Below are positions 4,770 to 51,924 of a DNA stretch of 64,000 nt, one piece after another. Origin of the DNA: Amphiscolops sp. MND2022. Lineage: Eukaryota. Location: contig OZ076409.1 in the NCBI GenBank assembly GCA_964187785.1, forward strand, positions 50,282,001-50,346,000, given 5' to 3'. The notes under the pieces are model-generated. The model had not been told where the DNA came from. It made no database searches and was given only the letters and a program-made list of their open reading frames with translations. The position numbers and the translations under genes were made by a program. The stretch's first letter is position 1, and every line of letters begins with the position of its first letter.

Positions 4770-5077
4770 CGTCATTGAACAAAGTTGAACTGTTGAATAT
4801 ATACGCATGCGATTAAAATAATATATATACATATTAAAATAATCGATGTCTTCGTCATGTGTTGCGAAGCACCGCTTCGCCTCTGTGTTGATGTTGTACA
4901 TTTCAAACCAACTTTGGTCTCTCCCAAGTTCAATTACGTCCGAGCCAAAATCATTCTCCGTGGTGCCTCCCGTAAAACCAATTTCGTTCAACAATTAATT
5001 GACCATACAACTCAATGAAAACAAGGTAATGAAGTTTTAATAGACAGAACAGTATTCAACCAAACATTGATTCTTGA

Positions 5078-8470: not shown

Positions 8471-8672
8471 TGTGGTAGTGTAAATGAATGACACTCAGAC
8501 ATTGTTTGTAAATAAATACAACATACCTGTCAACAGTCTAAACCTCAGAATAACCTGAGAAACATTTGCCTGAGAGCCTTAGAACAAGACAGTACTTCAA
8601 AAACATTCTCTTCATTGCAATTCACATATTAATCCTCTACATTGTTTTCCTTTACTGAGCTCCACGTCAACA
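8471..8672 (+). repeat. Gypsy-1 5' LTR
   Basis: TGTGGTAGTG...CACGTCAACA, matching 13500-13701. Confidence 0.95.
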
Positions 8673-11600
8673 TGGCGCTGCGAGCCGAAAATTCGAGCAA
8701 TTCTTCTTCATCTCATCTTGTCGGACTACCAGTGTTCTGGAACGATCCATCAATAAACCCAACAATGGACTGGGACAAGTGGATTGATTTATTCCAAGTA
8801 GCCATGATGGCAAAATATTCCATTTCGATAACTGAACTGACAAGGGCAGTAACAGAGCAAACGCCCAGGGTTCGTCCATTAATGGGGGATCTCGACGAAG
8901 ACCCTGCAAACAAGAAAACCATCAGTGTAATGTACCTATCATTGGGTGAAGCAGCCAGAAAACAGTTCATGGACAAATACCCTAATACAGCACTGTGGGA
9001 GTTAAAAGCAGGGGAACTGATTAATCTCTGTAATGAGTGTTTTCGGAAAAAACGAAATCGTACTTTGGATCGCCACAGATTCTTTTCGAGATTGCAACAA
9101 CCCGGCGAAACCCTCTCACAATTTTGGCACGCACTGAATGGGCTTGCAGCCATTTGCGACTTTGGAGAAATTACTACAACATTAGTACTTGACATGTTTA
9201 TTCTGCACATGAGCAATAAAAAAGTGCAAGAAAAGCTATGTACCGAGCCTAAGGAGCCCGATCAGGCGTTGGACTTCGCCATAGCCTATGAAGAAGGGGT
9301 GAAAAGACAGAAAACTTACGGGATGCAAGCTCCAGAAACATCAAAAACGTCCGTGAAGAGCGAGCCCATCTATGCGGTGGAAAAGTCCAAACCTCGGGAA
9401 TGCTTCAGATGCGGGGATCAAAACTTCACGATGGAGCACGTGAATTTCTGCATGGCCACAAACCATCGATGTAAATATTGTAAGATAGTGGGTCATCTCG
9501 AAAAATGTTGCAATAAGAAGTTCCCCCAGAGACAGAAGGAAATGATGCAAAGGCTCAAGACCCGTGACAACCAGCAGGGTATGCGAAGAGTTAATTATAT
9601 CGAGGAGTCTGACGAAGATGAAGAAGAAGACTACGAAGAAGACGAAGAGCAACTAGTTCTACGAGTGGACGGAGAAGGCAGTAAACCCTTCTACATGGAA
9701 GGAATGATGTGCGACAACTACTTCAAGGCTATCATAGATACCGGCTCCCCAGTCTCAATTTTTACAAAACGCGACCTACAAAAAATTGTGGGCGAGCGAA
9801 AAGTTGTAATTAGAGATATGATCGGGGGAGAAAAATACGTGGACTACAATAGAAAACCGTTAAAGTTACTGGGGTATCAGTTCGTTCGACTAGAAGTAGC
9901 AGGCGTAACAGTATCAAAAGCCAGAGTGTTAGTCGCGCCGAACTCAGGAAAGTCCATCGTGGGACGTGATTGGCTAGTTGCTCTCCGCTACAAAATAACG
10001 CAGCCAATAGAAAGAGGTGAGTGCGAAGTAAATAATCAATCTGTAAATAGTGATAATTTCGTTCGCGAGGTTAATCCCGAGAACAAACAAAGTCCCCAGG
10101 TTAAGCAACTTCAAGGGGAATTCCCAAAATTGTTTAAAAGAAAAGGACGTGTAAAGAACTACGAAATTAAAATTACAATGAAAGACAACGCTAAAATTAC
10201 GCAACAAAAAGGACGTAGAATTCCCATCCAGCTGCAAAACCAAGTGGACGAGGAAATTAATAAGCTGCTAAAGGAGGGGCATATTGAGAAAGTAGACAAA
10301 ATCCAAGATGACGTGTTTATTCAACCGACGGTAATTACTGTCAAAAAGGATAAGTCTGTGAAAATTGCTTTAGACGCGAGAGCGCTAAATGAGTCAATAG
10401 CTAAAGACAAATACCAAATGCCCAATTTAGAAAATTTAGTTGACATGATTGCTGAGAAACTCGATAAAGAAGAAGGGGAGGCCTGGTATTCGTCTGTAGA
10501 TATGACATACGCGTACGGACAAATTCCACTACATGAATTGACCAAAAAACATTGTAATTTTCAAATCGTCGGGGGTAAATCTACAGGGACATACAGATTC
10601 ATAACGGGATATTATGGCCTTACTGTAATGCCAACTGAATTTCAGAAATTAATGGACCTCACGTTAGCGAATATAAATAGTGTATTTGTGTATATAGATG
10701 ACATTTTAATTGTAACTAAAGGAACCAAGCAACAGCACATGAATAAAGTGAGGGAAGTTTTGAAGATTCTAGATAATGCAAATTTACAGTTGAAGGCGGA
10801 AAAATGTGTGGTCGCTCAAGAAAGTATAGAATGGCTGGGATACAAATTAACGAGAACAGGCATTTCCCCGATAAATGCAAAATCCCAGGGAATAAGTGAA
10901 AGACTTCGACCGACGAACTTAAAACAACTACGCTCATTTTTGGGAGCAGTAAATCAGTTTAACAAATTTATACCGAATTTAGCAGCAATAAGTTTCCCTT
11001 TTAGATCGATTTTAAAAAGAGACGCAGACTGGACATGGAATAGTGACCATGAAACAGCATTCAAGAGGATCAATGAAGAAATTAAAAAAGTAGTGGAACT
11101 GTCACATTTTAAAAGAAACCAAGAAATTAGAATCATTTGCGATGCAAGCAAGCAAGGACTAGGCGCAGTTTTACAACAAATCCAGAATAATGGTGAATGG
11201 AAACCAATTTGTTTTGCGTCAAGATTTTTAACTAATTTCGAAGCCAAATATTCAATTAATGAACTTGAATTGTTAGCTATCGTTTGGGCGGTAGAACATT
11301 TTAAAAACTATGTATATGGTGTAAAGTTTAAAATAATTTCCGACCACAAAGCATTAATGACAGTTTTAAAACCGAACAGGGGAAACAAGACCTTTTCCAG
11401 CAGATTGACAAGATGGGTAGATAGACTGCTACCCTTCGAATTCGAAGTGGTACATGTAGCAGGAAGAACACTCGGAATGGCAGACTATCTATCTAGACAC
11501 CCCTCAGAGTTAGAAGGGGCAACGATAAAGGCGGAAACCCTGTGGAATGAATGGTTCACTGTAAATAGCGTAATTAGTTTAAATAATGTTTTAGAGAACG

Positions 11601-23663: not shown

Positions 23664-23823
23664 NNNNNNNNNNNNNNNNNNNNNNNNNNNNNNNNNNNNN
23701 NNNNNNNNNNNNNNNNNNNNNNNNNNNNNNNNNNNNNNNNNNNNNNNNNNNNNNNNNNNNNNNNNNNNNNNNNNNNNNNNNNNNNNNNNNNNNNNNNNNN
23801 NNNNNNNNNNNNNNNNNNNNNNN
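23664..23823. other. Assembly gap (160 N) at the A/B junction
   Basis: Run of N. Confidence 1.
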
Positions 23824-25785: not shown

Positions 25786-26423
25786 AACAGTTTAGTTATA
25801 ATTTGGGCAGAATTATATTTGGCTATAATAATTTGTAGCTATCGCTGAAGTTTCAGCTATCAATTTGAAAGTAAAAGATGATTTGAGTAGTAGGAAACTC
25901 ATCACCTTTGCCAACAAAATTCCAATAGTAACTTCAATTTACCCAACGGAAGTCTTATAATAAACCTAAATTCAATTTTCTACACAGAGAGTCTAATAAT
26001 ATTTGTAGATGCATATCAAGCTTGTACGGCCACCACACGATCGGAATAGTGTTGAGAGAAGTTGCTTTCAACGATATATCGATTAGCCAATGAGAGTTTA
26101 GTTCGATTTTGTGTTCCCATTTTGTTTACAATTCGCGTCCGACAGTTCCGCTTGCTAGACATAGCGAGTCTGATAGTTCACAAAAGGTACATCGAAAATG
26201 TTTGGGCGTCTGAAAACCGTTTTAAAACGTCATGACTCGAACAGAAAAATATGAAAAGTTGTTCTTGCTATTGGTGAAAGCGTTTTTGGGCTTTTGTAGT
26301 AATTAATTATTGCTTCTTTGCAGTATTTGACTTCATCGAAAATTCGCTGGAACCACAGAGAGTATTTGTGGTGCTATTGAGAGTAGTATAATTATCGATT
26401 TTTTGCCATAGAGAGTAGTATAA

Positions 26424-26426
<3 letters not shown>

Positions 26427-26480
<54 letters not shown>
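26427..26480 (+). repeat. (TAA)18 microsatellite at the B/C junction
   Basis: Direct count of the perfect repeat. Confidence 0.95.
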
Positions 26481-26481
<1 letters not shown>

Positions 26482-26805
26482 TAATATTTGTGACAAGTTG
26501 CACAAAAAAGCATTAATATTGTGACATCCTGCACGGTCGGTAGCTAATATTCCTAGCAAGTTGCACACCCCTAATAATATTATTAAAATTATTATTATTA
26601 ATTGGTCGAGCAACTTGGCGTGCAACTTGTACCAGATTGCGTGCAACCTGGTTTCAACTGAGATTAATCCATTTTTTAAAAATCATGGTTTTTCATCTTA
26701 GTTTACATCTAGTTTCACTTTCCATTTTGCATCCAGTTTCGATTACATCTAGTACCATGCGTTTGCCATCGGTCTCGAGCTGACAATCTAAAAATTTGGA
26801 GAGCT

Positions 26806-29800
26806 TCAAATATTGAATTGAAACAGTTGAGATATTTTAAAGTTTGAAATGACAACAGTTAAGACAACAACATGGTAAAAATTTAAGATGACAACCAACA
26901 GGTAAAATACAGGTAATGAGCCGGCAACTTGAAAAGCAGATTTAATTTTTTGATATACGAATTTACACGAAGTGTCACTCAAATTGATTTTGAGATCCTT
27001 CAGATGCCATTTCAGATCTTTGAAAGTAATGGTGTTATTTGCATTGGCAAATGCCTTGCAGGCCTCCATTTCTTCCGTCGTCCAAATATGTTTCTCAGTG
27101 TCTCTAAATCGGGACATTGATCTGAGATACTTCTCACGGGAGAAACCTTTCTGTTTTTTTGGCGGAGGCTGATCCTGTTCTTCATCTTCTTCGGCATGAT
27201 CTTCTTCAATGTCGTTTTCATCATCTACATTTGGCTGGGGGCGTTTTGGGGAGAACACCAAATCTCTAGTTGAATTAAGACTGACGCGGCCTAGGGACAA
27301 AGGTCGGGGCCGGGGTTGAGGGCGAGTCGGGGGTTGACGGACAGGTTGTGGCACGGGAACATCAGCTTCGACTTCCGACTCGTCCGACATGTCCTCGATT
27401 TCCTCGGGACACACTTGCTCAGTAGATTCTTGAGTGGAGTCGAGGTCGCGGTTGTAAATGTTGATGATCCCAATTCGGTCCTGCAATTCCAGCCCCACGT
27501 AATGCAGTCCACCCGTGGTAGAACTATGGGCAGTTTGCGCGGAATGGGCATTCATCAAGTTGGCTGCCACTCCCATCTGCCGAACCCTCATCTCCCAGAA
27601 CTTACGAATGGAGTTGGCATTGAACCTGACCTCGCTCGGATCGTCTCCGAATAGCTCAGCGAAGGCCAGGTTCAACAACTGTGGCATTCGTGTTTCCACG
27701 TTGTTCTTCCCATTTGCGAAGATGAGGGCTTGTTGTTGACCAGATTCCTGTTCGCACCTCCGTTTCAGTTCCCACAGAAACTCCACCTGGTCTGGCTGGA
27801 TCATGAGGGCCACATCATATACATGACCAGTCTTGTGATCATCGGTTTCGTGGACCAGTCCTTTGCACAATTTGTTCTCAAAGGTCTCCCACTTCAACTT
27901 TAAAATTGACCCACTTCTGGTGTTCAGCCTGACCTGCATCAGGAAGAAATTGAGCGCCTCTAAGTTATTGAGCGAAAGGGTTTTTGACTGAAGATCCTCT
28001 GACAATCGTTCAATCACATCAGTCTTCCTTTGGCTCAGAACGGCATGTGACGGCACTTTCGAAAACATTTCCTTCCGGACAGTACGCTTGGCTTTGTTCA
28101 TCTCCTTCGACACATGAACTTTCTGCTCCTTGATTGCATGCATCATGGATTCATGGTCGAATGGGTATGTGTGAGATTCGTAGTGCCTCACGTACACCAC
28201 AAAGGACTTGAAATGTGTCAGGTACTGTACAACAGACTGTGGGGCCCATTTGCGTCGCTCTTTCAACCTGAAATGTATTTTACCTTTATTTATATACCTT
28301 TAAAAAACATTTATTTATTTACCTTTAAAAGGTATTTACATTCCACCTAATAAAAAATTTGCCATCGGTCGCGAGTCGAAGTTATTTGCCATCAACGAAA
28401 TTAATGTACCTGTTAACCGCAGCAGTGAGATTCTTGCTATTCGCGAGGGCATTTGTCCCCCTAAATAGCAGCGCCAGTGTTGTTCTCAAGGCCTGCTTCC
28501 CTTTCACGGGATCCTCGTCTTCCAGGCTGTATGTCCCGTGTCTCAGGTGGTGGTTATGGGCCAGGAACTGGTCCACCAGATGCAGGTGCTCCTCAGACGC
28601 TAATGTGCTGTTTTTCAGCTTCATTCTGATCTCCATGGGAAGACACTTTCTACTCTGGTGGTTCTCAATTTTTGAAACCTGCTCCAGGGAACACTTATAG
28701 TGTCGCTTGTGAGACCGCTTGTCCACAAACTGCTTTGCGTGCTCCTCGCAGTACCATACGTTGGCATTCCCATGGGCACTACGCATTCGGACGAAGTTGT
28801 TTATTACTTTGACTTCATCCACTGTAAATTCTTTGTGCACACTCAGTAAATGCCTGTCAAGCCGCTTCACGCTTTGATCACAGACTAAGCACTCAGTGAG
28901 TTGGGCGTGCTTCACTTTTTTGGTTACCTTGGTTGTTGCATCAGTTCTAGCGACCTTTTGAGTTGGTATGACAATTACCGACGGAGGTGTGGCGTCTAGT
29001 TCCAAAGTAGTTGTCAATGTGGAGGCAAGCGGTGTTTCAGGACTGGGTACTTGAGTTGTTGTTATTGTGGAGGCAAGTGGTGTTTCGGGACTGGGTACTT
29101 GAGTTGTGGTTTTTGTGGAGGCAAGTGGTGATTCGGGACTGGGTACTTGAGTTGTTGTTATTGTGGAGGCAAGTGGTGATTCAGGACTAGGTACTTGAGT
29201 TGGTGTTAATGTGGCTGCGTTTCGTGACAGTGGTTCTGGCTGTGGTTGTGCAAAAATCTTGTCCAGGCAGCTCTCGCAGCGACAGTCACAATTATTTTGT
29301 CCAAAGTAATGATCCGAATAATGCACAAATATTTCCTCATTTGCGTCTATGTGCCGCAGGGTCTCAATTCTGATGATCATTTTGCCGCGGGACTCACCAC
29401 CACACACGAATTTTGCATTTGGTTTGCAGTGGTGATTGATGAATGATGCTGGCCCGAGCATGATTGTTTCGAGCCCGCCATTGTTACTAAACATGGAGAA
29501 ATCGGGGACAATTTCTCCTTCGGGAACGGTGGCCATGTACCCGTCAAGTCCGGGAATGACAAATTTTTTGACAATGTTCTTCCTCGCTTTGACACAAATC
29601 TCGTCACTGTCACTGAAGTAGCCAGTTTTCGACGCATACTTCACGTACTCGAACGACGAGGCATATGAAGTGAGCAAGTCGTCTGCTAACTTCTTGACTT
29701 TTTCAGTGGCGACGTGAAGAAGTCTTCAGGTGGCGCACAGTACTTGTGACTTATTTTTCCAGCCACATCGATGAACAATTTTGTAAAATGTGCATCTAGC

Positions 29801-30974
29801 TGACCAAGAATAAGATCATCTCTCCTAACTTTCTTAACTTTCTTAACAGTGTCAGTTGGCACAGGTTCTTGCACGGGGTCGGGGACAATCTCTGGGACAG
29901 TCTCAATTGACAGAGGATCTGCGGCAATCTCAGTTGGCACAGGATCTTGCACAGGGTTTGGCAGAGGTTCTGCGACAGTCTCAGTTGGGAGAGATTCGGA
30001 GACTTGATCTGGGACAGTCTCAATTGACAGAAAATCTGCAGCAGTCTCAGTTGGCACAGGTTCTTGCACAAGGTTTGGCACAGGTTCTGCGACAGTCTCA
30101 GGTGGGACAGGTTCGGACACTTGATCTGGGACAGTCTCAATTGACAGAAGATCTGCGGCAGTCTCAGTTGGCACAGGTTCTGGAACTACAGGGACCGCTT
30201 TTTGACCGCGTTTTGCGCGTGTGACACGTGCTTCAGGAATAGTTAACTCGGGCACAGGGTTTGGCACAGGTTCTGCGACAGTCTCAGGTGGGACAGATTC
30301 GGACACTTGATCTGGGACAGTCTCAATTGACAGAAGATCTGCGGCTGTCTCAGTTGGCACAGGTTCTGGTACTATAGGGACCGTTTTTTGACCGCGTTTT
30401 GCGCGTGTGACACGTGCTTCAGGAATAGTTAACTCGGGCACAGGGTTTGGCACAGGTTCTGCGACAGTCTCAGGTGGGACAGATTCGGACACTTGATCTG
30501 GGACAGTCTCAATTGACCGAAGATCTGCGGCTGTCTCAGTTGGCACAGGTTCTGGTACTATAGGGACCGTTTTTGACCGCCTTTTGCGCGTGTGACACGT
30601 GCTTCAGGAATAGTTAAGTCGAATTGTGCAACTATCGAGGGCTCAAGTTGGACAGACTCAACAGTGGGGACTACTTTTCTGGCTACTTTTGACCGCTTTT
30701 TGCACGTGAGGCATGAGTTAAGCCTTGCAGGATTGTTGTTCCCTGGCGGGTGACACGAGTGGTTTGGTTGTTTATCTGTCCTCGAGTTGATGGCATAATG
30801 ATATAAGAAGATGTTGTGTTCGTGGTGAACGTTTTGCGTAGTGTAGGTTGAGTTTTGAAACAAGATAATGATTACCAAGTACATGCACCAAGTTATTTCC
30901 AATTGCGGTAATTGAGGCATCCTTTTGAGGCAGCGGTTAATTAATCTTTGACAAAATGAGTCCTTCACACGCAA
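26806..30974 (-). CDS. Repeat-rich N-terminus + SUV4-20-like SET + C2H2 zinc finger + tyrosine recombinase + Myb/SANT-like tail (spliced; two 1-nt frameshifts as assembled; 5' end uncertain)
   Basis: SET: DFSM...LGPASFINHHCKPNAKF...EEIFVHYSDHYFGQNNCDCRCESC, compared with SUV4-20 LGPAAFINHDCRPN...YGDGFFGENNEFCECYTC. ZnF: CLVCDQSVKRLDRHLLSVH. YR: RLNTRSG, DHKT, NANSIRK, TAHS, LHYV. A GT-AG intron at 28409-28268 joins ...AVNR to LKERRKW in frame, colinear with the intronless paralog at 52350. Confidence 0.85.
29860..30620 (-). repeat. Coding tandem repeats (180-bp/60-aa units plus shorter variants) in the SET-YR N-terminus
   Basis: PVPTETAADLLSIETVPDQVSESVPPETVAEPVPNPVPELTIPEARVTRAKRGQK repeated. 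A separate 48-bp (TQVPSPESPLASTITT) x4 repeat lies at ~29020-29205. Confidence 0.9.
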
Positions 30975-31136
30975 TTGATCTTTATATTTTTTCTTCTGTT
31001 TTACAGGTGTTTTATTGTCTTATGAAACTTAAAAATAACCTTTGAAAAATCAATATATTAAAAAATAATCGATAATTTGTATCATTAATTACATATGTTA
31101 TTTATGTTATCTATTAGTTAGCTCACGAATTAGTTA

Positions 31137-31357
31137 GCAAATTCAAACATATGTGGAAAATATCGCATCAGCTCACGACCGATGGCAAATTCAAACATAA
31201 TTGGAAAATATCGCATCAGCTCACGACCGATGGCAAATTCAAACATATGCGGAAAATATCGTATCAGCTCACGACCGATGGCAAATTCAAACATAATTGG
31301 AAAATATCGCATCAGCTCACGACCGATGGCAAATTCAAACATATGCGGAAAATATCG
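31137..31357 (+). repeat. 48-bp tandem array (~4.6 units, two alternating variants) between the divergent genes
   Basis: Unit GCAAATTCAAACATATG(T/C)GGAAAATATCGCATCAGCTCACGACCGATG. The motif CTCACGACCGATGGCAAA occurs at 31172, 31220, 31268 and 31316. Confidence 0.92.
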
Positions 31358-32128
31358 TAGCAGCAAAATGGCAAAAGTTTGCTTTAGTTTATTCACTTCA
31401 AATTGCTTGTTAGTGAGTCACTGTGATTTTCATTGGTTGTAATATGATTCCGTCCAGAAAACAGCGTGTTAACATTTGTTTACATTGCAAACTGACTTTC
31501 AATACATTTGCTTCGATTTTGTGCTTTGATTAGAAGGTTTTTGAACGCTCTCAACTTGATTTATTCAATTTCAATTCACGCTGCTATACAACTGCTAACG
31601 TTGACTGTTTATTTCCAGTTTATTTCCAGTCTGTTTAATTCCCTGTTAAATTTCCTGTTCGCCCTTTACAATGGATTTTTCACCCGGCCCCAGTAGAAAA
31701 GTACCAGGTTAAAATTGTTCAAACTATTTTCAATTGTTTTTGATTGTATGTTTGTTTTATACAGCGATACCCAGAATTAAATACAAAATTATTTCAATGA
31801 CAAAAGTATGTAATTTTGTTCCGGAAATAAACAAAGTTTAATTCGTTTCTCTATATTCAAAAAATACAATCATCAAAACTGAACTCAGAATCGTTCACGA
31901 AGAATAGTTTCAACAGTTTTTGATTGGGCGGTTTTTGCTTGGGCTCAAGATAAATCACAAAAGTTCATTTTGCTCACAATGCAAGTGTTTGGTTGAGTCG
32001 GTTACTCAACTTTCGTTTGGGAAAATATTTTTGTTATCTAGAAACAGTTTTTTCCAAATTTGGTGAAATTTGTATTTTCGGGGTTATTTATTATTGGGAA
32101 TCACTGGTTTAATATAAATATTTTCCAG

Positions 32129-35100
32129 GATTAGCCTGCGACATCGGTACGTGTGATTACGTTACGAACAAAGCATCAAACTTGGCACGCCATCGTTCAT
32201 CGTGCAAAGGTATGCCCCTGGAGGAGTGGAAAGTGAAGGAGCGCACATGTGAAAAATGTGGGCAGTTGTTCATGACAAAAATGAACAGAGTGCACCACCA
32301 ACAATCTGCCAAATATTGCACCGTGCAGGCGCAGACACCTGGAAAGATGAGACAATACAGTAATTGTTATTTACATATGTAATACAGTGATACTTTTTCT
32401 CAATTTTGATATAATTTTGCATAAAATTTCTGAAACATTTTATGTTTAATCAACCCCCTGATATAGCCGAAGCCCCTGATGAGTTTTGATTCAGAAATCT
32501 CTTAAAATCTCAACGAAAATTTGCTGTAAAATTGAGCTTTTTTGAAAAGACATGTGTTAGGATAAGATTTCGAATAATAACCTTTTAAAACAGGCTCGTG
32601 TTAATTCAATTGAAAAAAAATGTGTAATGTAATTTACATATGTAATGTAGAGGCTGCAAGGGGCGAGAAGCGGACCCCGTACTCGTGCCAGGGATGTGAC
32701 GCCACATACATGTATCGCAGCAATCTGCGCGAACACGTGGCCAGATCTACAAAATGCCATGCTCTTCTTCCTGCCATGCCCAAGGAACTCACATTTGAGT
32801 CGGTCCCACCAGCCCCATTTGGGACAATCAAGTTCTTCAAGTACTGCGAGTCTCTTCCACTGAATGGGAATTTCCATGTGGCACAGTGGGACGGGCCAGT
32901 GGATGACCAGAGCTCCAAACTGAAGAACTTGCTCCGACAAAGGATTCCACTGCTGTGGAAAAATGGAGCTGCATGTTGCAAGGGCCTCTCTATTCCAACT
33001 TCTGACCTCAATTATCCATCGTTTGTGGAATATTTGCTGCAACCGGAAAATCTGCAGCACCCCGAAGTGGAACTGGATGTGAAGTCTGCCAAAATTGGGA
33101 AGGTAAGCACATTGTCACAGTGTTGTTTGTACATTGATCGTTGTTGCTTAATGAATTTTATTAATCTTCAGACACGCAAGTTGAGTGCAAAGGAATTTGT
33201 TCGAGAGCTCCGGGAAGGAAACAAACCTTACGAACCTTTGAATGTCATTGACATCCAGTTGAAACCTAAGGTAGTTATATCATTTTTCATTTTGTGTATA
33301 TTATATTATTCACATTATATAATGTGTATTATATTTATTCACATATATTTTGTGTATGCATTTTTCATTCAATTAGGGCCTCTATCACATGCCGTCAATG
33401 GTGAAGGAGGCTTCTATCAGCCGTTATATCGATTCCCTGGCCAATCTAGAAGACATGGAGCCATACTCCAAGTCAACAGGTTACTACCTGTTGCTTTCGC
33501 AAGATGGGTGCCATACGACATGGCACAGGGATTTTTCGGCCACGTCCGTGTTTTACGTGGTCCTCAGAGGCACGAAAATCTTTTTCCTGGTGGAACCGAC
33601 TGATGCCAATGTTGCTATATTTGACCGTTGGTCTGAAGCGGAGTCCGACGTTTAGTATGTTATTTGTCACTCAGTTTGCCATAAATCACGGCGATGTTTT
33701 GATATGCTATAATTTTTATATTACTTTTAGTCCCACTTTCTTTGGCAACATAAAGGAACTCGAGGGGGGGTGTCGTCGGATTGTGTTGAATGCTGGCGAT
33801 TGTTTGGTGATGCCAGCGCATTTCATCCACCTGGTTCTGACTAAAGGTATTCTGAGTGATTGGTTAATTTAATCATAAATATTATCAAGGTTGCAAATTA
33901 AACATGTTTTTTTTTCAATTTATACCGTTTTTTTTTTTGAAACAAATCATGTTTTTTTGTTTTTTATTGTTTTTTTTTCAAATAAATGCAAAATAACTGC
34001 AGACTCATCTAATAAAAACATACAACACAGTCAAATTTTAGCTATTCGATAAAATGACGTCATTAAACTTTCGTTTAAACACCTGTTTGAACCACTGCCA
34101 ACATTGAATATTATTCATAATTGATTAAAAATATAATGCGTTTAGGAAATTCAGTTGCAATTGGGACCAATTTTTTGGCGAAGGGACACCTTGACGTCAT
34201 TTTGAAGCAGTTCGTTGAGGACAATAAGCTCTTAAACGAGGGGCTTCTTTGCGATGAAGAAATGTTCCCGGGACTGGCAGACATGATGGCGGTATTTCTT
34301 TACGTGACACTGCGAAAAAAGTTGAGTTTCAATCTCATCGACGATGTACTCGCCATCAATAGCGTCATCATGGATAAATACAACGAAGACAATGTGAAAA
34401 GTGTAAGTATTGAGAATTGTGTAAATTGAACTGTCGATTTGCCATCGGTCGCGAGCCAACTCATTTTATATATTTATAATATAAACTTTTTTATTATTTT
34501 CATATACATTTTATACATATATTATATATTTATAATATATTTGTTTTGGCACTTTTTATATATTAATAAAAAACTGAACTGTCGATTTGCCATCGGTCGC
34601 GAGCCAACTCATTTTATATATTTATAATATAAAATATATTTTTTCATATTTATATATATTTTATACATCTTTTATATATTTATATGTTTATAATATATTT
34701 ATTTTGGCACTTTTTAAAAAATAATAAAAAACTGAACTGTCGATTTGCCATCGGTCGCGAGCCAACTCATTTTATATATTTATAATATAAAATATTTTTT
34801 AAATATATTTATATATATTTTATACATATTTTATATATTTATATGTTTATAATATATTTATTTAGGCAAATTTTATATATTAATGAAAAACTGAATTGTC
34901 AATTTGCCATCGATCGCGAGTACACATAATGTATTGTTTATTTTTTAGATTATCCCAGGCTTTAGCAAAACCAAACTGGCAAATAGAATTGCCAATGCGG
35001 TGCCACCAGTGGAGGCCACGTCATCGCCTCGTTGCCTGTTGGACTCCAAGCCGATTACAACCCTAAATTTTGGCGCAAACTTGGCTGCAATTCCCACGTG

Positions 35101-35287
35101 GAAAGGTGACCTGGTAGAGGGGGAGGCTGCAACAACTACCACGGAGACTCCATTAACCACTGAGGACCTCATTGCAGACATGGTTTCCCTGCAGTGCACT
35201 GACCCCGATTTTGTGCCACGTCGGCACGAAATCTTGGAAGTCTTGAAACCTGGTTTCAGGCATTTCAAACTCTGTGAAACTCTGTGA
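32129..35287 (+). CDS. Multi-exon zinc-finger + JmjC protein (KDM2/KDM7-PHF8-like putative histone demethylase); first exon/start uncertain
   Basis: JmjC motifs: LLSQDGCHTTWHRDFSATSVFYVVLRGTKIFFLVEPTDAN (HxD, K) and LNAGDCLVMPAHFIHLVLTK|GNSVAIGTNFL (distal H; compare IHAVLTPxDxLxFGGNFL). GT-AG introns at ~33103-33170, ~33270-33376, ~33657-33730, ~33848-34145 and 34403-34948 give an in-frame product. N-terminal fingers CDIGTCDY..RHRSSC, CEKCGQLF..HHQQSAKYC and CQGCDATY..REHVARSTKC. Confidence 0.85.
34430..34920 (+). repeat. AT-rich ~150-bp tandem repeat in the last JmjC intron, each unit containing TTTGCCATCGGTCGCGAG
   Basis: Motif at 34438, 34586, 34744 and 34903. Confidence 0.85.
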
Positions 35288-37423
35288 AACTAGAAACTGT
35301 TTTCTTGTTAGTTATTTTCTTATTTAGTTGTGAAACTTGTTTTCTCATTTATTATTTATTCTTTTATTTAGAAGAAATTATTTTCTTACTTAGTAGAACT
35401 CGTTTTCTTTAGTTGTTTTACGAAGTCGCACGTGAACTTAAAAAAACATTCAGACAGAAGAAAATTTCAATGTTACTTTTGAAAAAACATTTTTAAAAAG
35501 TATTAAAACAAAATTCCCAGGTTGGGGGGTCTTATTTACAGGTACTGCAGTCAATGACGAATAGAATAGTACCTGGCCCCATCTTTTTGAGAGAGAACTT
35601 AACTGGCCCCATCTTAAGAGAACTTAACAAAATAATTTCCAAAATAAATTCAGAAAGTATGAACTTTTCATGTGTTTTTTGGAAGAACATCAAAACCTAT
35701 TCCTTTGAGTTTGTATTCCCGTCCTTTTGAACCAACAACATTGAACCAAGTTGAGATTGTCCATCTGAGACCCCCCTGGTCCCACTTCACCAAAATTTGT
35801 TCTATTACTCACCGTCTTCATACTACAGTCGCGCGTGTACTAACTGCACACACGTACATGTACTCGTTCACACTGGACTGCATACAAGCAATTATGACGT
35901 CACCACTTGTTCACGGCTGTACTGCATACACTCACATTTCGTTCACATTACATGCAATCGTTCACACTGTACACACTGTTCACTGTACATTTACTGCATA
36001 TACTGCGTGGTTTATTCAACAAAATAATTGAAAACTACAGAAAGTACATTATATTGTGGTTTGTAGTATTTTTGTTATCTTTTCAAGAATTATTTCAAGA
36101 ATCACGGACACGTCTTATTTCCCCCAGGTACAAACGATGTCTATATGATTACATACAGGTATGTACATACATTTCAATATCCTGTACACAAATAATACTA
36201 GATGAACCATAAAAAACGGAATGCATAAAAATTTTCGAGCTAACAAATTTTCAAATATTTGTCAACAAAAGTTTCAAAACAACTCTGAACAATGCAATTC
36301 AGCTCGTCAGTCATTCAATTTGACAACTTTTTTCGAAGCCAAGAAACTTTCACACATAAAAATTGTGAACTAAATGACTGGTAAAGACGTCTAGGCTACG
36401 TGTATTTCTGAAGGTTCAGATTAATCTTTCTTGAAGAATTGATTACGAAATGAGATGATGATTGACAAAAGAAAGGGAAAGATTCTCAGTGTGTTGTTTA
36501 CAAATATTAAGATTTTGAAGAGTGAATAATTTTTGTGCGTTCCGTTTTTTTGGTTAACCTAGTACATTACATTCCCATTAAAGCAAAATTGACGGATTGT
36601 CTCCAGAGATGTTTCGACACGTTATTGCTTTTAAAATAGACATTATTGGATTATATTATTTTTTATCGGAATGCTCAAGGTAATGTCTAGTTCTTTTCAT
36701 CGCAAACTATGCTCAACGCAAATTTTCTATTTTCTGATCTTTTTTGAAATCGTTCTTTGTTAATTTCTCTACACACAGGATTGCATCGTTGATTTTTTCG
36801 AAAGGAATCTGATGAAAACAATAGATGATTCCAAACAATGAAAAAATAAATAATTTATCAATAAATTTTATAAAAAAATAATAATTTAATGTTTCATGAA
36901 ATGTTCAATTTGATGAAATGTTTTATGCAACGACTGCTGTTCTCACTGCAAAGTATTGGTACCTTTTTGCTCAGTATTTCAAAGATCCACACCCTGTGAT
37001 CCCATTGTGAGTTTCTGGTTACTTTATAATAATTAGAATTATTTATGCTTTGAATGTTTGAATTTTTCCAATGAGACCCTTCAGAGGCCACGTTCTCGAC
37101 GTGGGTCTTGTTAAGGGCGACACTATGTGATCCCCTAACTGAGAGCCTCTTTAAAAATACAATATACTGGGAAAAAGTGTAACATTGTTGTGATTTTTGT
37201 TATCATAGCAACCACTCGTTCCCGACATTTTCGTTACAACCAACATTGGTGTGAATGACTTTTTAAAATTTCTACAAAGTTCAATTTTGGACTCTGTGCG
37301 AAGAAAATGTGTAATGTGTAAAGTGTACCATCGGTCGCGAGCCAACACGTTATATACATTTAAAGTATTTATATTTTAAATTAAAATGGCAATTTCCCAT
37401 CGGTCGCGAGCCAACACATTGTA

Positions 37424-37601
37424 CAGTTTAACTTCAGTATCACACATGTGCACTATAGTGTAACCTTCAGAATAACGCACATAGTTTGTGCCCCCGCGTT
37501 TGGTTTTTATCATTTGGTCTTTTTCGCTTATAACACACACTTCAGAATAACGTACTTGAGCGTTTTCTCCCAGCGAGGTGTATAATACTGAAGTTAAACT
37601 G
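37424..37601. mobile_element. 178-bp Tc1/mariner-type MITE
   Basis: Perfect 17-bp TIRs CAGTTTAACTTCAGTAT (37424-37440) and ATACTGAAGTTAAACTG (37585-37601), flanked by TA on both sides. Removing it restores the neighbouring motif-bearing tandem unit. Confidence 0.85.
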
Positions 37602-38190
37602 TATACATTTATATTTTAAATTGAATTGTTCTTTTGCCATCGGTCGCGAGTCTAGAGGAGGTGTGTGCGGTGGAGCTCAATATAGCAGATTACCCAATCA
37701 GAGACCAGTATTCAGCTGCGCGCGGTCGTTTAATCTTTTAATCACACCTAATTAAATCGTGCATGTGTTAAATCGTTCACTATTGAATTCGTCACCTTTT
37801 TTGTCAAAATGTGTTGGGATATACTTTAGGACTCATAAAACGTTGTTATAGATCATTTGGAAGTTGTTCTTCGTGAATAATATGTTCGTCAATTTTTCAT
37901 TATTAATAAATATTACGTGGTGTGCAACCTGTCCAGACCGTGCAACTTGCATGTAACTTGTCACCAAAATCGAAGCAAAAAAACGAGCAAATTGTCATTA
38001 ATAATGAAGGTCTTCCCGAGGGGTATAAATTTTTGTTTATCGATAAATCAACGTTTTTTGCGCTCAATAAGACTTTCTAGAAATTTTATCCAGGTTTTTC
38101 ATCTCAAAAAAAAGTTATACCTTGTTACATCTTGCCCGCCAAGTTGCACTCGGGAAAGTGGAACTTGTGATAATATTAGGTTTTTCCCTA

Positions 38191-38373
38191 NNNNNNNNNN
38201 NNNNNNNNNNNNNNNNNNNNNNNNNNNNNNNNNNNNNNNNNNNNNNNNNNNNNNNNNNNNNNNNNNNNNNNNNNNNNNNNNNNNNNNNNNNNNNNNNNNN
38301 NNNNNNNNNNNNNNNNNNNNNNNNNNNNNNNNNNNNNNNNNNNNNNNNNNNNNNNNNNNNNNNNNNNNNNNNN
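38191..38373. other. Assembly gap (183 N) at the C/LTR junction
   Basis: Run of N. Confidence 1.
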
Positions 38374-39995: not shown

Positions 39996-40901
39996 TGGTG
40001 ACAGGAGTATCTCCCCAACCAGAAATACCGCCCCGGTCATCAAGCTTGCCGCCCCCAACCAGAAATACCCGGACCACATAGTAGACAAAGTGCTCGAATC
40101 GTTCCGGAATGTCACCCAACAGAACATCAGACTTCAACAACTATGCCCACCTTTAACGGACGAAATGACAAATTCGAGCATTTCGAAGACCTCTTCATGA
40201 CAAGCCTCAAGGTATACCCTAACATATCTGAGGAAGAACAAATCCATTACTTCCACTCCCTACTCAGGGATGAAGCACTCCAAACATATCGCAATATGAC
40301 CGACACAAATCGTGCCAGCTTAGAGGACATCATTGCCACATTCCGACGCAGATATGTACGCCCCAAATCCATCGCAACAGCCAGATGCAAATGGGGGCAA
40401 CTCCACTTTGATCCCTCACGGCAAACATTCCAAGACTTTCCGGAACAATACCAAAAATTGGCGCAAGAGGCATACGGAGAAGACGCCCCAAAATTCATAG
40501 AAACATCTTTTTATGCCAAAATGCCGACCCACTTAAAACGAGTTCTCAACCAAGCAAGGTTAGAAACAGAATCTTACGATTTGATGGTCCAACATTTGGA
40601 GAGGGAAATGGAATTAAACGGACTGTTGGCCCCCAGCGAAACCAACATAACAGGTGTACATCAAAACGAAGTACAAGAAACACAACAAGCCCCAAACCCT
40701 CCCAAACCCACAGGCCCATGCTACGGATGCGGACAACCTGGCCACGTTGTCAAAAATTGTCGAAAATTAGCCCGTGAAGCCCGCAATAGAGGTAACAGAG
40801 TACCTAACAAAATCGTCGACCCATGCGAAACATGTGGCAAAAAGAGCCACTCAACGCAGGATTGCTATTCAGGCGCAAACTGGGCGAACCGACCACAGTG
40901 A
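39641..40901 (+). pseudogene. Gypsy-2 gag (frameshifted), starting inside the LTR
   Basis: ATG at 39641 (MPERSSKRK...). The second fragment has capsid-like 'MPTFNGRNDKFEHFEDLF' and CCHC knuckles CYGCGQPGHVVKNC and CETCGKKSHSTQDC. Confidence 0.8.
39996..40008 (+). promoter_or_regulatory. Gypsy-2 primer-binding site (tRNA-Leu-like)
   Basis: TGGTGACAGGAGT at the exact point where homology with the 3' LTR ends; one mismatch from the tRNA-Leu(CAG)-type PBS TGGTGTCAGGAGT. Confidence 0.7.
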
Positions 40902-42199
40902 TGGAAAACCCCAAAAACCACGCCCCCGAACAATATCCCGATAACACCACAACAAGGTCAGTACGTAAAAGAAAACTCACAAATAACTCAACCCCAAAAC
41001 CAAAACCAGACAACAAGCCAAATGGGCTATCTACCCCCACCCCAATTGACAACTCAATCTCACGAACAAACCCAGCCAAAAAACTAGCTTTGCCACATCT
41101 TCAGTTTGGGGAAACCGTCGAAACCCGACATTTCACAATATCAGAGCCCCCAAACACTTACGATCGCGAAGAACACAATGAGCGCTGTGAAAAACCATCT
41201 CTCGACTGGCAGCGAAGATGGCAAATTCACAAGCTCCACAAATATAACCGTCAAACTACGACCAAAATAGACTACCCACAATGGTACATTGACAACCCGA
41301 CCGACTACAATACTCCAAAACGACCCTTACCAGAAAGCACCTCCCCTGAAACCTACATTCATGACCCCGAGTTCAACTGCGACCCGTACCCTAATCCCCA
41401 ACTTTACGACAGAGAAACATTAACCTTTAGACAGAGAGAGTGCACGCCATTTGAGGAATACATCAAGAAAACGGGAATGAACATCTCAACAGAGCCACGT
41501 CACAGACCAAAAACTGTCCAACCTGTACCAGAGTATGACCAAGATGTAGAACGTGTAACAGAAATATTAGTCGATAACCCGACTAACAGACCCAAGTCCA
41601 TACTCAAAAACCAGGGATCTCAAATCACGGCCCCCCAATCACCACCAAAAAACCAACAAGTCAACCCTATCAGAGCCGGAATCATACGATCCCCAACAAT
41701 GGACGTGGCACCCGACTGCCACCAACACGAAAACATCACCTGCAGGACCACGACTGAAGCCGTGGACCCGGCCCAACCCACAATCAACAAGTAGACAACA
41801 CCCTCCAAACCAACAGCAAGGAGGATCAAGAGGCCTCTAATGTTAGAGCCCCCCCACCTCAATAGTCAGCCGCAAGATGAAGTTGAACTCACCCAACCCA
41901 TCATGGCTGACGCAACTAACATGCAGCCTGAATCCCAATCAGGTGTTGCAAACAGCACACCTCAACAGGACAGCTCTAGGTCCTACCCCTCAGAGCAGAC
42001 TGCAGAATACCCGAGGCAAAATCATAGGGCCAGGGGAACTCCCAGTCCCCTCTCCCAAAACGACAGTCAGTCTGAAAACGAAGTCGAGGACCCTCGACCC
42101 ATAGAGACTGCCACAACGAACTTGCAATCTGGATCCCCCTCAGGTGCTGAAAACTTCACACCGCCACAGGACGAACCCCAGTCCTACCCTACGGCCCAG

Positions 42200-45100
42200 A
42201 TTGCAGAATACCTCACAAGGGTCCCCGTGACCAACGAGCAATGCATCACAATCTCCTCAGCAGTAACACTCAAGAAGAAGAAGAAAATGATATTTGCTCC
42301 AATGGATTTCCAGGACTTAACCCTGGATGCCCTCATAGACTCCGGCGCCCTTGTTAACTGCATTTCAGAAACAGACTACAACAACCACCCCCCTTCAAAC
42401 TTCAAGTCGCAAATAGCGACATCGAAACACCAACCAAGACAATCAACCTCCAATTCGAAATAGGGGACTGGAACTTTAAAGCAACATTCATTGTTGCCAA
42501 ACGACTGACAGGCCCAATACTCGGCCTTACCTTCCTCAAGAACAATAGCGCTATCCTGGATGTGAATCAGGGCCTGCTCCACTTCCCTCACTTCACATAT
42601 TCCATCGAAACTGACGAGTATACCCGCAACCGAAAACTCTATAAAGTCCAAATAAAGAACCCACCCACCATACCTCCCGAGACAACGCAGACAATCACTG
42701 GCTACACGGACATATCATCTAGCATCGACACAACCGGTGTCATCAACCCAGCCACCAATCACTGTAGCGGTGACCCCCTGGTGGTAGCCAGCTCAATATA
42801 AACAGCCTCAAACTGTAAGATCGACGTCAGGGTGACCAACACCACCCCCACACCCTACACCATGAAAAAGAATTCGACGATAGCGGAGTTCAAAATTATG
42901 TCACCAGAAGAAGCCAAAGAACTCAAACCACTCAACACAGCAGCACTCAAAGTGCTCACCGAAGATGATTCAGAAGACGCAATAGTCTACATCAATGAAC
43001 TTCTAAAAACTTCTGACAAAGCCTCCAACATCCAACACTTTTGGTTCCCCACGCCAAATGACCCCGGGGACCCTAACACCCACACGCCGATCCAAAGCCG
43101 AAACTTGCGAGAAGTAAAAGAACTGGAAGAGATTCAGAAACTAAACCCTACCAACAGTGACGAAGAAATAGAGGCATTCCTCAAAAACTTCAAATGGGAT
43201 GACACACAACTGGACATTGGAATCAACCACGATTTCAAAATTAAACTCACGCCGGAAACAGATGAACCAGTCTACTCACAGAGCTTGCCCTGTCCTTTTA
43301 ACCTAAAAGAAGACTTGACAGTGGAACTGGCATTAATGCACTACTTCGGGATCATAACAACCCTCCCATTCAGCAAATACGCCAGCCCGATCTTTGCCCA
43401 GCGCAAACCGAACGGCCGACTGCGCCTACTAGTGGACCTCAGAAAGATCAATAACTTGATCTCGGACGATTACATAAACAACAATCATCCGGTCAGCACA
43501 CTAACCGATGCCGCGCAACACCTCGCTGGCAAGAAGTTGTTTTGCAAACTTGACTGTCCACAAGCGTACCACGTACTGCAGATGGCAGACCAGAAGTCCG
43601 TCCAACTTCTCGCCTTCAACTTCGCCAGCAGAACTTTCGCATACCTCAGACTGGCCCAAGGACTGAGCAGATCACTATCGTCCTTCTCAAGTTTCATGCG
43701 AGAATACCTGGACAAGGCCATAAAGGCGGACAATTGCGCCCAATACGTAGATGACATTGGAATTGCCACAAACACTCCCGAAGAGTTGAAAAACAATTTG
43801 AGAGAGGTCTTCCAATGCATCCGCGCAGAAGGACTTCGGCTTACAATGGCCAAATGTCAGTTCGGCGCCAAGGAAGTCGAATTCCTTGGGCGAACAATCT
43901 CTCCATCGGGTGTGGCGCCCCAGAGCCACAAAATCCAGAAGTACTTGCAAACGCTCAAATTCCCCCGAACAAAGAAAGGACTTCAAAGATACATCGGATT
44001 TGTAAATTATTACAGAAACTATATCCCCGATTATCAGAGAAGATCGCTCCTTTCCACGAACTCATAAAATCTGACAAGCCAGCAAAAATTGACCAGAAAC
44101 TTATATCCAACTTCGAAGCCATCAACAGGTCACTGGACAACGCGTGCGGACTTTGGCTCAAACAGCCACTGCCAAACCGACAGTACGTCTTGATGACTGA
44201 CGCCAACTTCAAAAACACCGGATACGCCCTAATGACCGAAGAGGACCCAGAACAGAAGATCACTTCCACCAAGAAAACATATGCCCCTGTAGCATTTGGA
44301 TCCAAAACCTTCTCCCCGTCACAATTGAAAATTTCAATTTATGCAAAGGAGTTTTTGGCCATCTGCTTTGCCTTCATGGAGTATAGCCATATCTTGTGGG
44401 GGTCCACCAAACCAATCATTGTCCTGACAGACAACAAGTCAGTCACGAGATTTTTCCAAGCCAAAATGATTCCACCCTCCCTGTGGAACGCCTGCGATTT
44501 CGTACTCTAATTTCACTTCAAAATCGCCCATGTACCAGGACGGATGAACACAGCGGCCGACTTCCTCTCCCGATTGGACATCAGCCCCAAAGAAAAAATC
44601 CTTCTCCAAATCAGAGAAGACATCCAAACAACACCCATCCAGGTGAATATCCAATCCTCCGACATTCACGAGGAAAACCAGTTCTACTTTTTCCAGAAGA
44701 CGACTCCGAGACAGAAGAAGACATCTGGGAGCAAAAACAAAGAGCGCGCAAGAAAATATACAGCCCCCAAGAACACGAAACTGACTCACCAGCCGCGACA
44801 AATGAGACAAACTCTCAAACGGAGAACTTACCATTAGTGTGCAATAATATCCAAGATCCAGAACAAGAACAAAGGCGCCAACTTCACAGTGACACAAGTT
44901 TCCCACGTAGTCTGAGACCACACCAGGACCAGGACCCCGTCCTCCGAAATCTCAAACTGAAAATGTTAAAAGAGCAATATGACACCCAACTTCTGAACGA
45001 TGATCCCAGAGCAACCAAATACTTAACTCAAGAAGACAGAATCATCATCAAAGATGGGCTACTGTACAGACAATACTTCGGAGACAATGGGAAAGTAAAA

Positions 45101-51875: not shown

Positions 51876-51923
<48 letters not shown>
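51619..51923 (+). repeat. Gypsy-2 3' LTR, left part, ending in (TAA)15
   Basis: Matches 19407-19695; (TAA)15 at 51879-51923. Confidence 0.88.

Positions 51924-51924
<1 letters not shown>

Follow-up and report, generated by a model that had tools for sequence, protein, structure and literature searches.

Gene structure at the locus

The window analysed in this study, a 64,000-nucleotide stretch of contig OZ076409.1 of Amphiscolops sp. MND2022, contains two neighbouring minus-strand ORFs, one (28382–29677) specifying a SET domain and zinc fingers and the other (26806–28266) a tyrosine recombinase (YR). A sequence-only reading of this DNA had joined them into a fusion gene at 26806–29750; its ORFs and frames were right, but that span covers only part of the gene, which starts about 1 kb further upstream, at 30796. 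From this ATG, exon 1 (28410–30796, minus strand) encodes N-terminal repeats, a SET module, Thr/Pro-rich repeats and two C2H2-like zinc fingers. A phase-2 GT–AG intron follows (28268–28409, minus strand), and then exon 2 (26806–28267, minus strand, including the stop codon), which specifies the core-binding and YR catalytic domains (residues 1–280), an acidic/proline-rich linker and a conserved C-terminal domain. The splice sites can be read directly, with the donor CAG/GTACAT at 28410/28409 and the acceptor TTTCAG/G at 28268/28267, and the spliced junction in the protein reads ...TAAVNR/LKERRKW. The intron is 142 nt long in the window and 143 or 145 nt in other copies, a spread accounted for by a T-run. 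The zinc fingers (28700–28894, minus strand) have the forms CxxC...HxxxxH and then CxxH...HxxxH, are common to paralog D and to the protein P0038 (see below), and give weak Pfam matches to ROS_MUCR.

The copy in the window is dead. Its exon 1 carries three private frameshifting deletions, of 4 nt at ~29712, 1 nt at 30575 and 1 nt at ~30686, and the missing bases are present in 11 other copies and in read-derived contigs. Programmed −1 frameshifting from the N-terminal repeat ORF into the SET ORF was rejected, because the frame break is the 4-nt deletion, which is private to this copy. In intact copies, the ORF from the equivalent of the ATG at 30796 gives a protein of 1248 aa, in which the order is N-terminal basic/acidic repeats, SET and post-SET, two C2H2-like zinc fingers, core-binding and YR domains, acidic linker and C-terminal domain. 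The N-terminal repeats carry AKRGQK-type lysines.

Evidence for splicing, and the spread of the fusion

Genomic comparisons indicate that the SET–zinc finger and YR parts form one spliced protein, of ~1248 aa in intact copies. The family represented in the window (C) has a diverged subfamily, C-beta, with 46–50% aa identity to it and with synonymous sites saturated between the two. C-beta has GT...AG at the identical codon (AAC AG/GT...CAG/G), flanking an intron of 144 nt that cannot be aligned with that of C and contains in-frame stops in six of six copies. A shared intron codon at this degree of divergence, together with relatives in which the frame runs on uninterrupted, argues that the fusion is real. 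These relatives are paralog D (52350–54617), P0038 and a frame on C11. Both exons align to D in order and without interruption, the zinc-finger part (E 1e-4) ending at FRGT and the YR part (E 2e-18) beginning 12 residues further on. P0038 is a single ORF of 895 aa with SET, zinc fingers and YR, from an unrelated metagenomic element on a JGI metagenome contig. In the same genome as the window, a SET match (C11:60851911) and a YR match (C11:60853441) lie in phase within one open frame of 1153 aa. The intron proposed earlier between SET–zinc finger and YR is thus upheld in its splice sites and phase, and found at a conserved position in a diverged subfamily; the proposed colinearity with intronless D, and the lack of a SET domain in D, hold as well.

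The fusion itself was correctly recognized in the sequence-only reading, but it was missed that the window copy is frameshifted and that the fusion represents a large, old and diversified family rather than a one-off. The genome yielded at least 150 SET matches (512 candidates) and at least 140 YR matches (804 candidates), and about 70 of the SET matches listed have, by hand cross-matching, a YR match 1–4 kb downstream on the same strand. The order SET-then-YR, as judged from these matches, recurs in dozens of divergent families in the Amphiscolops sp. MND2022 genome. A search for YR plus SET in other animals, as suggested earlier, turned up no named protein of this kind: homologous-protein searching with the SET region found only four proteins, all ENA entries probably from the same species. 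No relatives of P0038 were found among metagenome contigs.

The recombinase domain

The YR active-site residues lie within 27499–27918 on the minus strand, and comprise R117 (27918–27916), K145 (27834–27832), N218/R221 (27615–27604), H247 (27528–27526) and Y256 (27501–27499), placed by sequence pattern rather than by structural superposition. Conservation in alignments A1 and A2 extends to R117, K145 (in HKTG), R221, H247 and Y256, as expected from the R, K, R, H and Y noted earlier, while in the canonical HxxR box an Asn (N218) replaces the His.

Sequence searches were largely empty. Pfam PF00589 (Phage_integrase) gave no match to the window protein, and in family members only sub-threshold ones, in P0176 (E 2.8e-4, 21.2 bits against a cut-off of 27.1) and in 2 of 33 A2 members (best E 1.3e-5). 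DUF3504, the Crypton-derived domain, had no Pfam match in the protein or in 33 family members at E values up to 1, and neither the protein alone nor a 33-sequence profile found a direct match in Pfam or among PDB sequences. The fold was therefore shown by way of structure prediction. An AF2 model (pLDDT 89, pTM 0.82) was compared with the PDB using Foldseek, and its best 48 matches were all tyrosine recombinases. VIA-align gave Z 13.2 with XerA (rmsd 3.3, 168 aa), 12.4 with XerH and ~11 with Cre (model residues 4–289). The top 30 AFDB Swiss-Prot structure matches were all Xer/Int, with DUF3504 proteins absent, and neither these matches nor Pfam (the protein and 33 family members) indicated kinship to Crypton YRs. 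Of the two routes proposed for recognizing a phage-integrase fold, structure prediction succeeded where a Pfam match to the window protein did not, and the model confirms a predicted two-domain tyrosine-recombinase fold, with a helical core-binding domain and a catalytic domain.

The SET module

SUV4-20/KMT5B, KMT5C and fungal Set9 are H4K20 methyltransferases, and a SUV4-20-like character had been claimed for the SET domain of the window. The module (29267–29829, minus strand) contains DFS (29503–29495), NHHC (29437–29426), AKF (29416–29408), VHY (29326–29318) and a post-SET CxCxCxxC (29290–29267), so that all of the features claimed (DFS, NHxCxPN, the Tyr and the post-SET cysteines) are present. 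The NHxC motif (NHHC), the Tyr of VHY and the post-SET cysteines are invariant in alignment A3, with members down to 32% identity. The predicted post-SET zinc site, assigned from sequence, combines the Cys of NHxC with CxCxxC (C136, C184, C186 and C189, all invariant).

Pfam SET was matched above its cut-off (E 1.9e-8, 35.1 bits against 22.4). Among relatives of solved structure, a single-sequence search placed KMT5B/SUV420H1 (E 4e-14) and KMT5C (8e-12) first, with KMT2C as the next family (2e-3); a family-profile search gave KMT5B E 6e-19 (71.6 bits), KMT5C 3e-17 (66 bits) and, next, KMT2C 3e-6 (29.7 bits), and no SET family besides KMT5B/C scored within 40 bits. By both searches, then, the SET domain appears closest to KMT5B/C, in agreement with the earlier claim. 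The identity of ~40–45% extends over only ~80 residues, the HMMER alignment covering the C-terminal half of SET and the post-SET region and leaving unplaced the N-terminal half, where SUV4-20 enzymes have a distinctive helical flanking domain. The proposed structural check failed for this domain: an AF2 model built from a seven-sequence alignment had a pLDDT of 43 and was unusable.

Suv4-20h2 has a non-canonical active site, with Ser161 and Phe191 instead of a Phe/Tyr switch (PMC3874154). Equivalents of its Ser161, Phe191 and Tyr217 are present in the SET module, the DFS Ser and AKF Phe aligning to the DFS and CKF of KMT5B. The Suv4-20-specific Ser and Phe positions are retained in the C, C-beta and P0182 lineages, and P0038 has Tyr at the position of the specificity-determining Phe191. 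Between C and C-beta, pN is 0.22 for SET, 0.28 for YR and 0.27 for the zinc fingers, with pS of 0.87–1.0. These values show purifying selection on SET, at least as strong as that on YR, while the subfamilies diverged to synonymous saturation.

The mobile element

The gene lies within a stretch (26423–38190), here called element C, that is common to 11 other genomic copies at ~99% identity and whose far end meets an N run (38191–38373). The element is at least 11.8 kb long, with 12 copies on nine contigs and sharp boundaries; at least six of the 12 have an intact spliced ORF (one such copy lies at C12:24704924–24708724), and many have private frameshifts or deletions. One end adjoins (TAA)n in 12 of 12 copies, with mostly unrelated flanks beyond, and in the window this is a (TAA/ATA)n microsatellite of ~20 units (26426–26486) at the element boundary. 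(TAA)n is also found at the boundary of C-beta and D. Just inside the boundary of the window copy, five GTGCAACTTG-type 10-mers form a subterminal cluster (26494–26650) of candidate recombinase-binding sites, and the opposite end of the stretch has a second subterminal cluster, of four motifs of this type (37922–38167). The window has 18 matches to the motif against 4.7 expected, a number reached in none of 100 shuffles. No reverse transcriptase (RT), LTRs or long TIRs were seen in the element, its far end being masked by the N run.

In another part of the element (31400–38190), ORFs of at least 70 aa gave weak JmjC/cupin matches only, and a putative JmjC/cupin gene is borne by the element family. 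The gene described here is probably the recombinase gene of a recently active, Crypton-like YR DNA transposon, the likeness to Cryptons being drawn from the (TAA)n at one end of every copy and the GTGCAACTTG clusters at both ends.

Alternative explanations

It could be argued that there is no fusion, and that the locus holds two adjacent, separate genes, with SET–zinc finger ending at the TAA at 28382, the recombinase translated alone and the supposed intron being an intergenic spacer. The contigs obtained from four sequencing runs are unspliced DNA, splicing was read from genomic sequence, and ORF-based gene callers give the parts separately (P0179–P0182; P0001). This explanation is nevertheless very improbable, given that D, P0038 and the 1153-aa C11 frame run uninterrupted across the position of the junction, and that GT and AG recur at the identical codon in a subfamily with unrelated spacer sequence; moreover, exon 2 offers no in-frame Met before residue 41–42, and a start there would cost the first core-binding helix. 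Even less credible is a family of domesticated host genes, for which strong purifying selection and the presence of introns might be cited. It is contradicted by the sharply bounded 11.8-kb unit, whose 12 copies on nine contigs are ~99% identical and lie mostly in unrelated flanking sequence, by private frameshifts or deletions in many copies, and by hundreds of diverged relatives in the genome.

The function of the SET domain leaves more room for alternatives. It might be a non-catalytic module that binds nucleosomes or the H4 tail and tethers the recombinase, like the chromodomains of chromoviral integrases. Purifying selection shows function and not catalysis, the N-terminal half is neither aligned nor modelled, and chromatin readers are the commoner precedent for capture by transposable elements (Grau-Bove et al.). 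A pure binding module would, however, be expected to lose some of the residues needed only for catalysis or cofactor binding, and since all of these (NHxC, the active-site Tyr, the DFS Ser and the post-SET zinc cysteines) are kept, and are invariant down to 32% identity, this seems unlikely. Much the same weight can be given to an active enzyme with a substrate other than H4K20, be it the element's own protein (with the AKRGQK-type lysines of its N-terminal repeats), a host factor of repair or silencing, or a different lysine on a histone. The shortness of the region of similarity to KMT5B/C, the Tyr of P0038 at the Phe191 position and the JmjC/cupin gene of the element family would all be compatible with it; against it stand the Suv4-20-specific Ser and Phe kept in three lineages (roles as in PMC3874154) and the distance of more than 40 bits to all rival SET families.

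Proposed mechanism and significance

Under the preferred reading of a transposon-borne SET–YR recombinase, the YR would excise and integrate the element in the manner modelled for Cryptons: the (TAA)n at the element's own junction would recombine site-specifically with (TAA)n microsatellites of the genome, and the zinc fingers and the motif arrays would supply DNA recognition. The SET domain, covalently joined to the YR, would actively methylate lysines and would modify in cis the chromatin of the donor or the target site; by analogy with KMT5B/C, nucleosomal H4K20 would be its most likely substrate. Its role could be to place a self-limiting silencing mark on the element, to influence how the site is repaired or recombined, or simply to hold the recombinase on nucleosomes. 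The sequence-only reading had in the same vein suggested that the recombinase could deposit or exploit H4K20 methylation, a mark linked to repeats and to the choice of double-strand-break repair, at its own sites of excision or insertion. It may be speculated, though we would not expect it on balance, that a recombinase with an active H4K20-type methyltransferase would act together with the JmjC gene carried by the element as a mobile writer and eraser, setting the chromatin state of donor or target. The transposon might in this way direct repair or recombination, or else bring about or evade silencing, and the strategy would have arisen long enough ago for dozens of families to have diversified from it.

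Transposons borrow chromatin readers (chromodomains, PHD fingers), and a few lineages carry DNA methyltransferases or TET enzymes. A histone-type lysine methyltransferase within a recombinase, under selection and across many active families, would, if true, mean that a mobile element writes histone marks where it acts, and would be relevant to the ways in which transposons select targets or make them ready and live alongside host silencing, and to the origin of SETMAR-like fusions. The family also offers a eukaryotic YR with an apparently simple microsatellite target and with intact, recently active copies for cloning. Literature searches for a Crypton or tyrosine recombinase with SET, JmjC, KMT5 or histone methyltransferase found no such element, and the SET–YR fusion, as read from these genomic sequences, appears not to have been described before as the recombinase gene of a transposon in the literature searched.

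Comparison with known systems

Crypton DNA transposons were reportedly described by Goodwin in 2003. They have since been treated by Kojima and Jurka in 2011 (PMC3212892), and CryptonF-1_cRei is an active example (PMC9977147). Cryptons are eukaryotic DNA elements with a YR as the sole recombination enzyme, and their genes can carry introns. Element C would share this make-up, RT, LTRs and long TIRs not having been seen in the part covered. At its end a Crypton has a short sequence in common with its target, and there is no classical TSD or TIR; in element C the common sequence would be (TAA)n. The differences lie in the SET domain (no SET-bearing Crypton was found in the literature searched), the N-terminal C2H2-like zinc fingers, a YR without a DUF3504 or Phage_integrase Pfam match, and a putative microsatellite target instead of a 5-bp motif. 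The YRs of endogenous nimaviruses, which are telomere-repeat- or rDNA-specific (PMC10871703), are likened here by description, not by sequence: they too are eukaryotic YRs with C2H2 zinc-binding and SAM-like/core-binding domains that insert into simple repeats, but they belong to giant viral genomes, target (TAACC)n and have no SET reported.

With SUV4-20/KMT5B, KMT5C and Set9, the SET module shares the C-terminal half of SET and the post-SET region, including DFS, NHxCxPN, xKF, the Tyr and CxCxxC. It differs in an N-terminal half that is unalignable here and in residing inside a recombinase that is multi-copy and mobile. Host-type epigenetic domains have also been permanently recruited in the chromodomains of chromoviral integrases, in DNMT-bearing retrotransposons (PMC5890265) and in TET/JBP-bearing KDZ/Plavaka elements (PMC12730594), but both the enzyme (a histone-type SET) and the transposition chemistry (YR) differ here. 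A survey of fusions between transposable elements and chromatin proteins mentions those with SET only generically, with SETMAR as the example (bioRxiv 10.1101/2021.11.30.470311). SETMAR, of primates, resembles the present protein in combining a SET methyltransferase and a transposase in one spliced protein; it is, however, a single domesticated host gene with a DDE mariner transposase and a SUV39-type SET, whereas the gene described here would be the working gene of active, multi-copy YR transposons.

The fused gene and its intron

On the minus strand of element C, a Crypton-like mobile element, two ORFs lie in different frames 115 nt apart: an upstream ORF of 431 aa (28382–29677), in which Pfam detects a SET domain at a score exceeding the gathering cut-off (E 1.9e-8), and a downstream ORF of 486 aa (26806–28266), whose protein matches nothing in Pfam or among PDB sequences. 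The sequence-only reading joined them, as SET plus zinc fingers and tyrosine recombinase (YR), by a phase-2 GT-AG intron (28409–28268, minus strand), and this model holds up. The intron is AT-rich and 142 nt long; SET and zinc fingers lie in exon 1, YR and a C-terminal domain in exon 2. The donor reads AAC AG/GTACAT (28410/28409) and the acceptor TTTCAG/G (28268/28267), and removal of the intron gives the protein junction TAAVNR/LKERRKW. The claimed colinearity with a SET-less, intronless paralog is also borne out: element D encodes zinc fingers and YR in one intact, uninterrupted 755-aa ORF (52350–54617), which aligns with the zinc-finger part of exon 1 through FRGT and resumes on exon 2 12 residues later. 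In C-beta, a diverged subfamily elsewhere in the genome (L031–L036; 46–50% amino-acid identity to element C), the exons meet at the identical codon (AAC AG/GTAC...TTTGCAG/G CTA), around a 144-nt spacer that has in-frame stops in all six copies and is 50% identical to the window intron, no more than a forced global alignment gives. The element C spacer behaves like non-coding DNA, since its length differs through a T-run (142, 143 or 145 nt) among 12 near-identical copies. Intronless versions exist as well: P0038, a single 895-aa ORF on a 6.3-kb JGI metagenome contig, carries SET (Pfam E 1.2e-5), zinc fingers and YR, and in this genome a SET match (C11:60851911–60852489) and a YR match (C11:60853441–60854289) lie 1530 nt apart, in phase, both listed within a 1153-aa open frame. 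The continuity of D, the intron position kept in C-beta, the non-coding spacer and the intronless versions are four independent lines that agree in showing, at the level of sequence, a real fusion predicted to be one spliced gene. Contigs from four public runs are DNA and span the intron unspliced.

C-beta has an additional intron in its zinc-finger region (EEVRTLK/GT...CAG/DFLRTRRAH; L031:5600–5950). Neither element C nor P0181, a related ORF, has this intron, so intron gain or loss has occurred inside the SET-YR family.

Intact copies and the full-length protein

A genome search found 12 copies of element C at ~99% identity on nine contigs. In their alignment only the window copy is missing 4 nt (~29712) and 1 nt (30575), and read-derived contigs hold those bases plus one more at ~30686. 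These three deletions, 6 nt in total, shift the window copy, and hence a separate "repeat ORF" (29686–30546) appears in another frame; the window copy is dead. Of the 12 copies, at least six have an intact spliced ORF, and in four of these (L003, L004, L005 and L009) it specifies 1248 aa beginning MPSTRGQINN, from an ATG that corresponds to window 30796. In the intact protein, the first 320 aa (window 29830–30796, minus strand; L003:3108–5498, minus strand) are made up of repeats of ~60 aa with basic ARVTRAKRGQK and acidic PTETAADLLSIETVPDQVSE units. Subfamilies share the extreme N-terminus (MPS/TxRxQ...TRQ) in the SET family alignment, and it resembles the MARVLRSGRR of D. This region may serve as an NLS, for DNA binding or as a pseudo-substrate. 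Contigs of all four public runs also include a variant that skips 794 nt (26786–27579 absent, with nine other letters at the joint), an internally deleted derivative whose recombinase gene has lost its C-terminal part.

The SET module

The SET domain had been described as SUV4-20-like, and its closest solved relatives are indeed KMT5B/SUV420H1 and KMT5C/SUV420H2. As a single-sequence query it matched KMT5B at E 1e-14 and KMT5C at E 3e-12, the next family being KMT2C (E 5e-4); with the family profile the values were 6e-19 (71.6 bits), 3e-17 and 3e-6 (29.7 bits), respectively. The alignment spans the C-terminal half and post-SET region, where the NHxC motif, active-site Tyr and post-SET zinc cysteines were found; the N-terminal half did not align, and AF2 gave no usable model of the module (pLDDT 43). 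The NHxC motif, the Tyr and four zinc cysteines are invariant in members down to 32% identity. The unusual active site of Suv4-20 is defined by Ser161, Phe191 and Tyr217 (PMC3874154), the equivalents of which in element C lie in DFS, AKF and VHY. Comparison of C with C-beta gives saturation at synonymous sites (pS 0.87–1.0) and non-synonymous differences of 0.22 in SET, 0.28 in YR, 0.27 in the zinc-finger region and 0.24 in the C-terminal domain, so SET is constrained at least as strongly as YR. These comparisons show KMT5-like SET motifs held by purifying selection.

The recombinase domain

The downstream ORF is shown by modelling to have a YR fold with active-site residues, as had been proposed. 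The AF2 model, built from a 33-sequence alignment, has pLDDT 89.2 and pTM 0.82, and its top 48 Foldseek PDB matches are all tyrosine recombinases. With VIA-align it matched archaeal XerA (Z 13.2, rmsd 3.3, 168 residues), XerH (Z 12.4) and Cre (Z ~11), and since residues 4–289 of the model are covered, both core-binding and catalytic domains are matched. AFDB Swiss-Prot matches are all Xer or integrase proteins, and AFDB cluster matches are uncharacterised eukaryotic proteins, some named "Tyr recombinase", "C2H2-type" or "Core-binding domain-containing". The claimed R, K, R, H and Y are conserved as R117, K145 (HKTG), R221, H247 and Y256, which fit a YR active site, and Asn218 replaces the His of the HxxR found in most YRs. 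Neither Pfam scans nor the AFDB Swiss-Prot fold search found a signal of DUF3504 (Crypton-derived). Of 1.84 billion representative proteins, only 150 matched a profile built on the C, C-beta and D domains. Surveys that rely on domain models would overlook this YR, as Pfam does not recognise it.

Extent of the family

Within the genome, at least 150 matches to the SET module are listed (512 candidates; 34–100% identity), many within long open frames, and at least 140 to YR (804 candidates). By hand cross-matching, about 70 listed SET matches have a listed YR match 1–4 kb downstream on the same strand (e.g., C4:70211663/70209862, C9:57227052/57228701, C5:13228420/13226216, C2:51851408/51852956 and C6:13031575/13029253), and among the matches listed such pairs fall into a dozen or more divergent groups. 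In the YR tree, SET-bearing P0038 clusters with the related protein P0022, well away from the C clade (98/93 support), so that SET-bearing members occupy two deep branches; "SET-minus" labels in this tree carry little weight, since ORF callers end their calls at introns. On its JGI metagenome contig (3300045271; L047, 6332 nt) the intronless SET-ZnF-YR ORF of P0038 (2257–4944) lies between inverted arrays of an 18-nt motif, with TTGCTTACACCGCGAGCA arrays upstream (780–2199) and their reverse complement downstream (5061–5452), an arrangement that mirrors the clustered motifs found at both element C ends. A more distant YR (31% identity) has at least 14 near-identical copies within open frames of ~1384 aa (e.g., C2:43709261, C3:44958801, C4:36007380 and C9:14243166), and further relatives lie in open frames of 985–1333 aa.

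Element ends, possible target and neighbours

Element C is present in multiple copies, in association with (TAA)n. Its copies share window 26423–38190, at least 11.8 kb, similarity ending at an N run (38191–38373). At the other end a (TAA)n run adjoins every copy (window 26426–26486), with mostly unrelated flanks beyond, and (TAA)n also occurs at the examined boundaries of C-beta (L031 2275–2301) and D (51879–51924). Ten-mers of the GTGCAACTTG type cluster at 26494–26650 and 37922–38167; the window has 18 matches where 4.7 would be expected. Element D (51879–54617, plus strand) begins just after a perfect (TAA)15, which suggests that it targets the same microsatellite as element C would.

Inside element C is a divergently oriented multi-exon gene (32129–35287, plus strand), an ORF of which (33389–33652) matches Cupin_8 (E 1.9e-4) and JmjC (E 7.7e-3) below threshold. 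Most copies keep this region; L037 lacks 33325–36414 and L038 lacks 36072–37300. Two copies, L003 and L009, share one orientation and are separated by 15,128 bp (C12:24704924–24723852), perhaps as a tandem or nested pair. N runs occur in the window at 23664–23823, 38191–38373 and 55232–55440, two of the three exactly at the expected ends of elements C and D. The window also holds a Gypsy-type retrotransposon (8642–13363, plus strand) with an unbroken pol-like ORF of 1573 aa (RT, RNase H, integrase), and a BEL/Pao-like element (40143–46692, plus strand) with gag/RT/integrase ORFs split among several frames. BEL/Pao elements are known only from metazoans, which marks this genome as that of an animal.

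Possible functions and comparison with known elements

The fusion protein would perform SAM-dependent methylation through its SET domain, with H4K20 as the putative substrate, and may play a role in repair choice or silencing. It is possible, as the sequence-only reading proposed, that the recombinase deposits or exploits H4K20 methylation at its own excision or insertion sites. SET may instead act on a non-histone substrate or have a non-catalytic tethering role.

In the Crypton model, a tyrosine recombinase joins a short element-junction sequence with a near-identical genomic target (PMC9977147). The anatomy of element C agrees with this; the target here would be a microsatellite, the YR presumably integrating the element into (TAA)n. 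No description of a tyrosine-recombinase element with a SET domain was found in the literature searched, and a survey of fusions between transposable elements and chromatin proteins names SET only generically, with SETMAR as example (bioRxiv 10.1101/2021.11.30.470311). Two known kinds are joined here: a Crypton-like YR transposon and the capture of an epigenetic enzyme by a transposable element.
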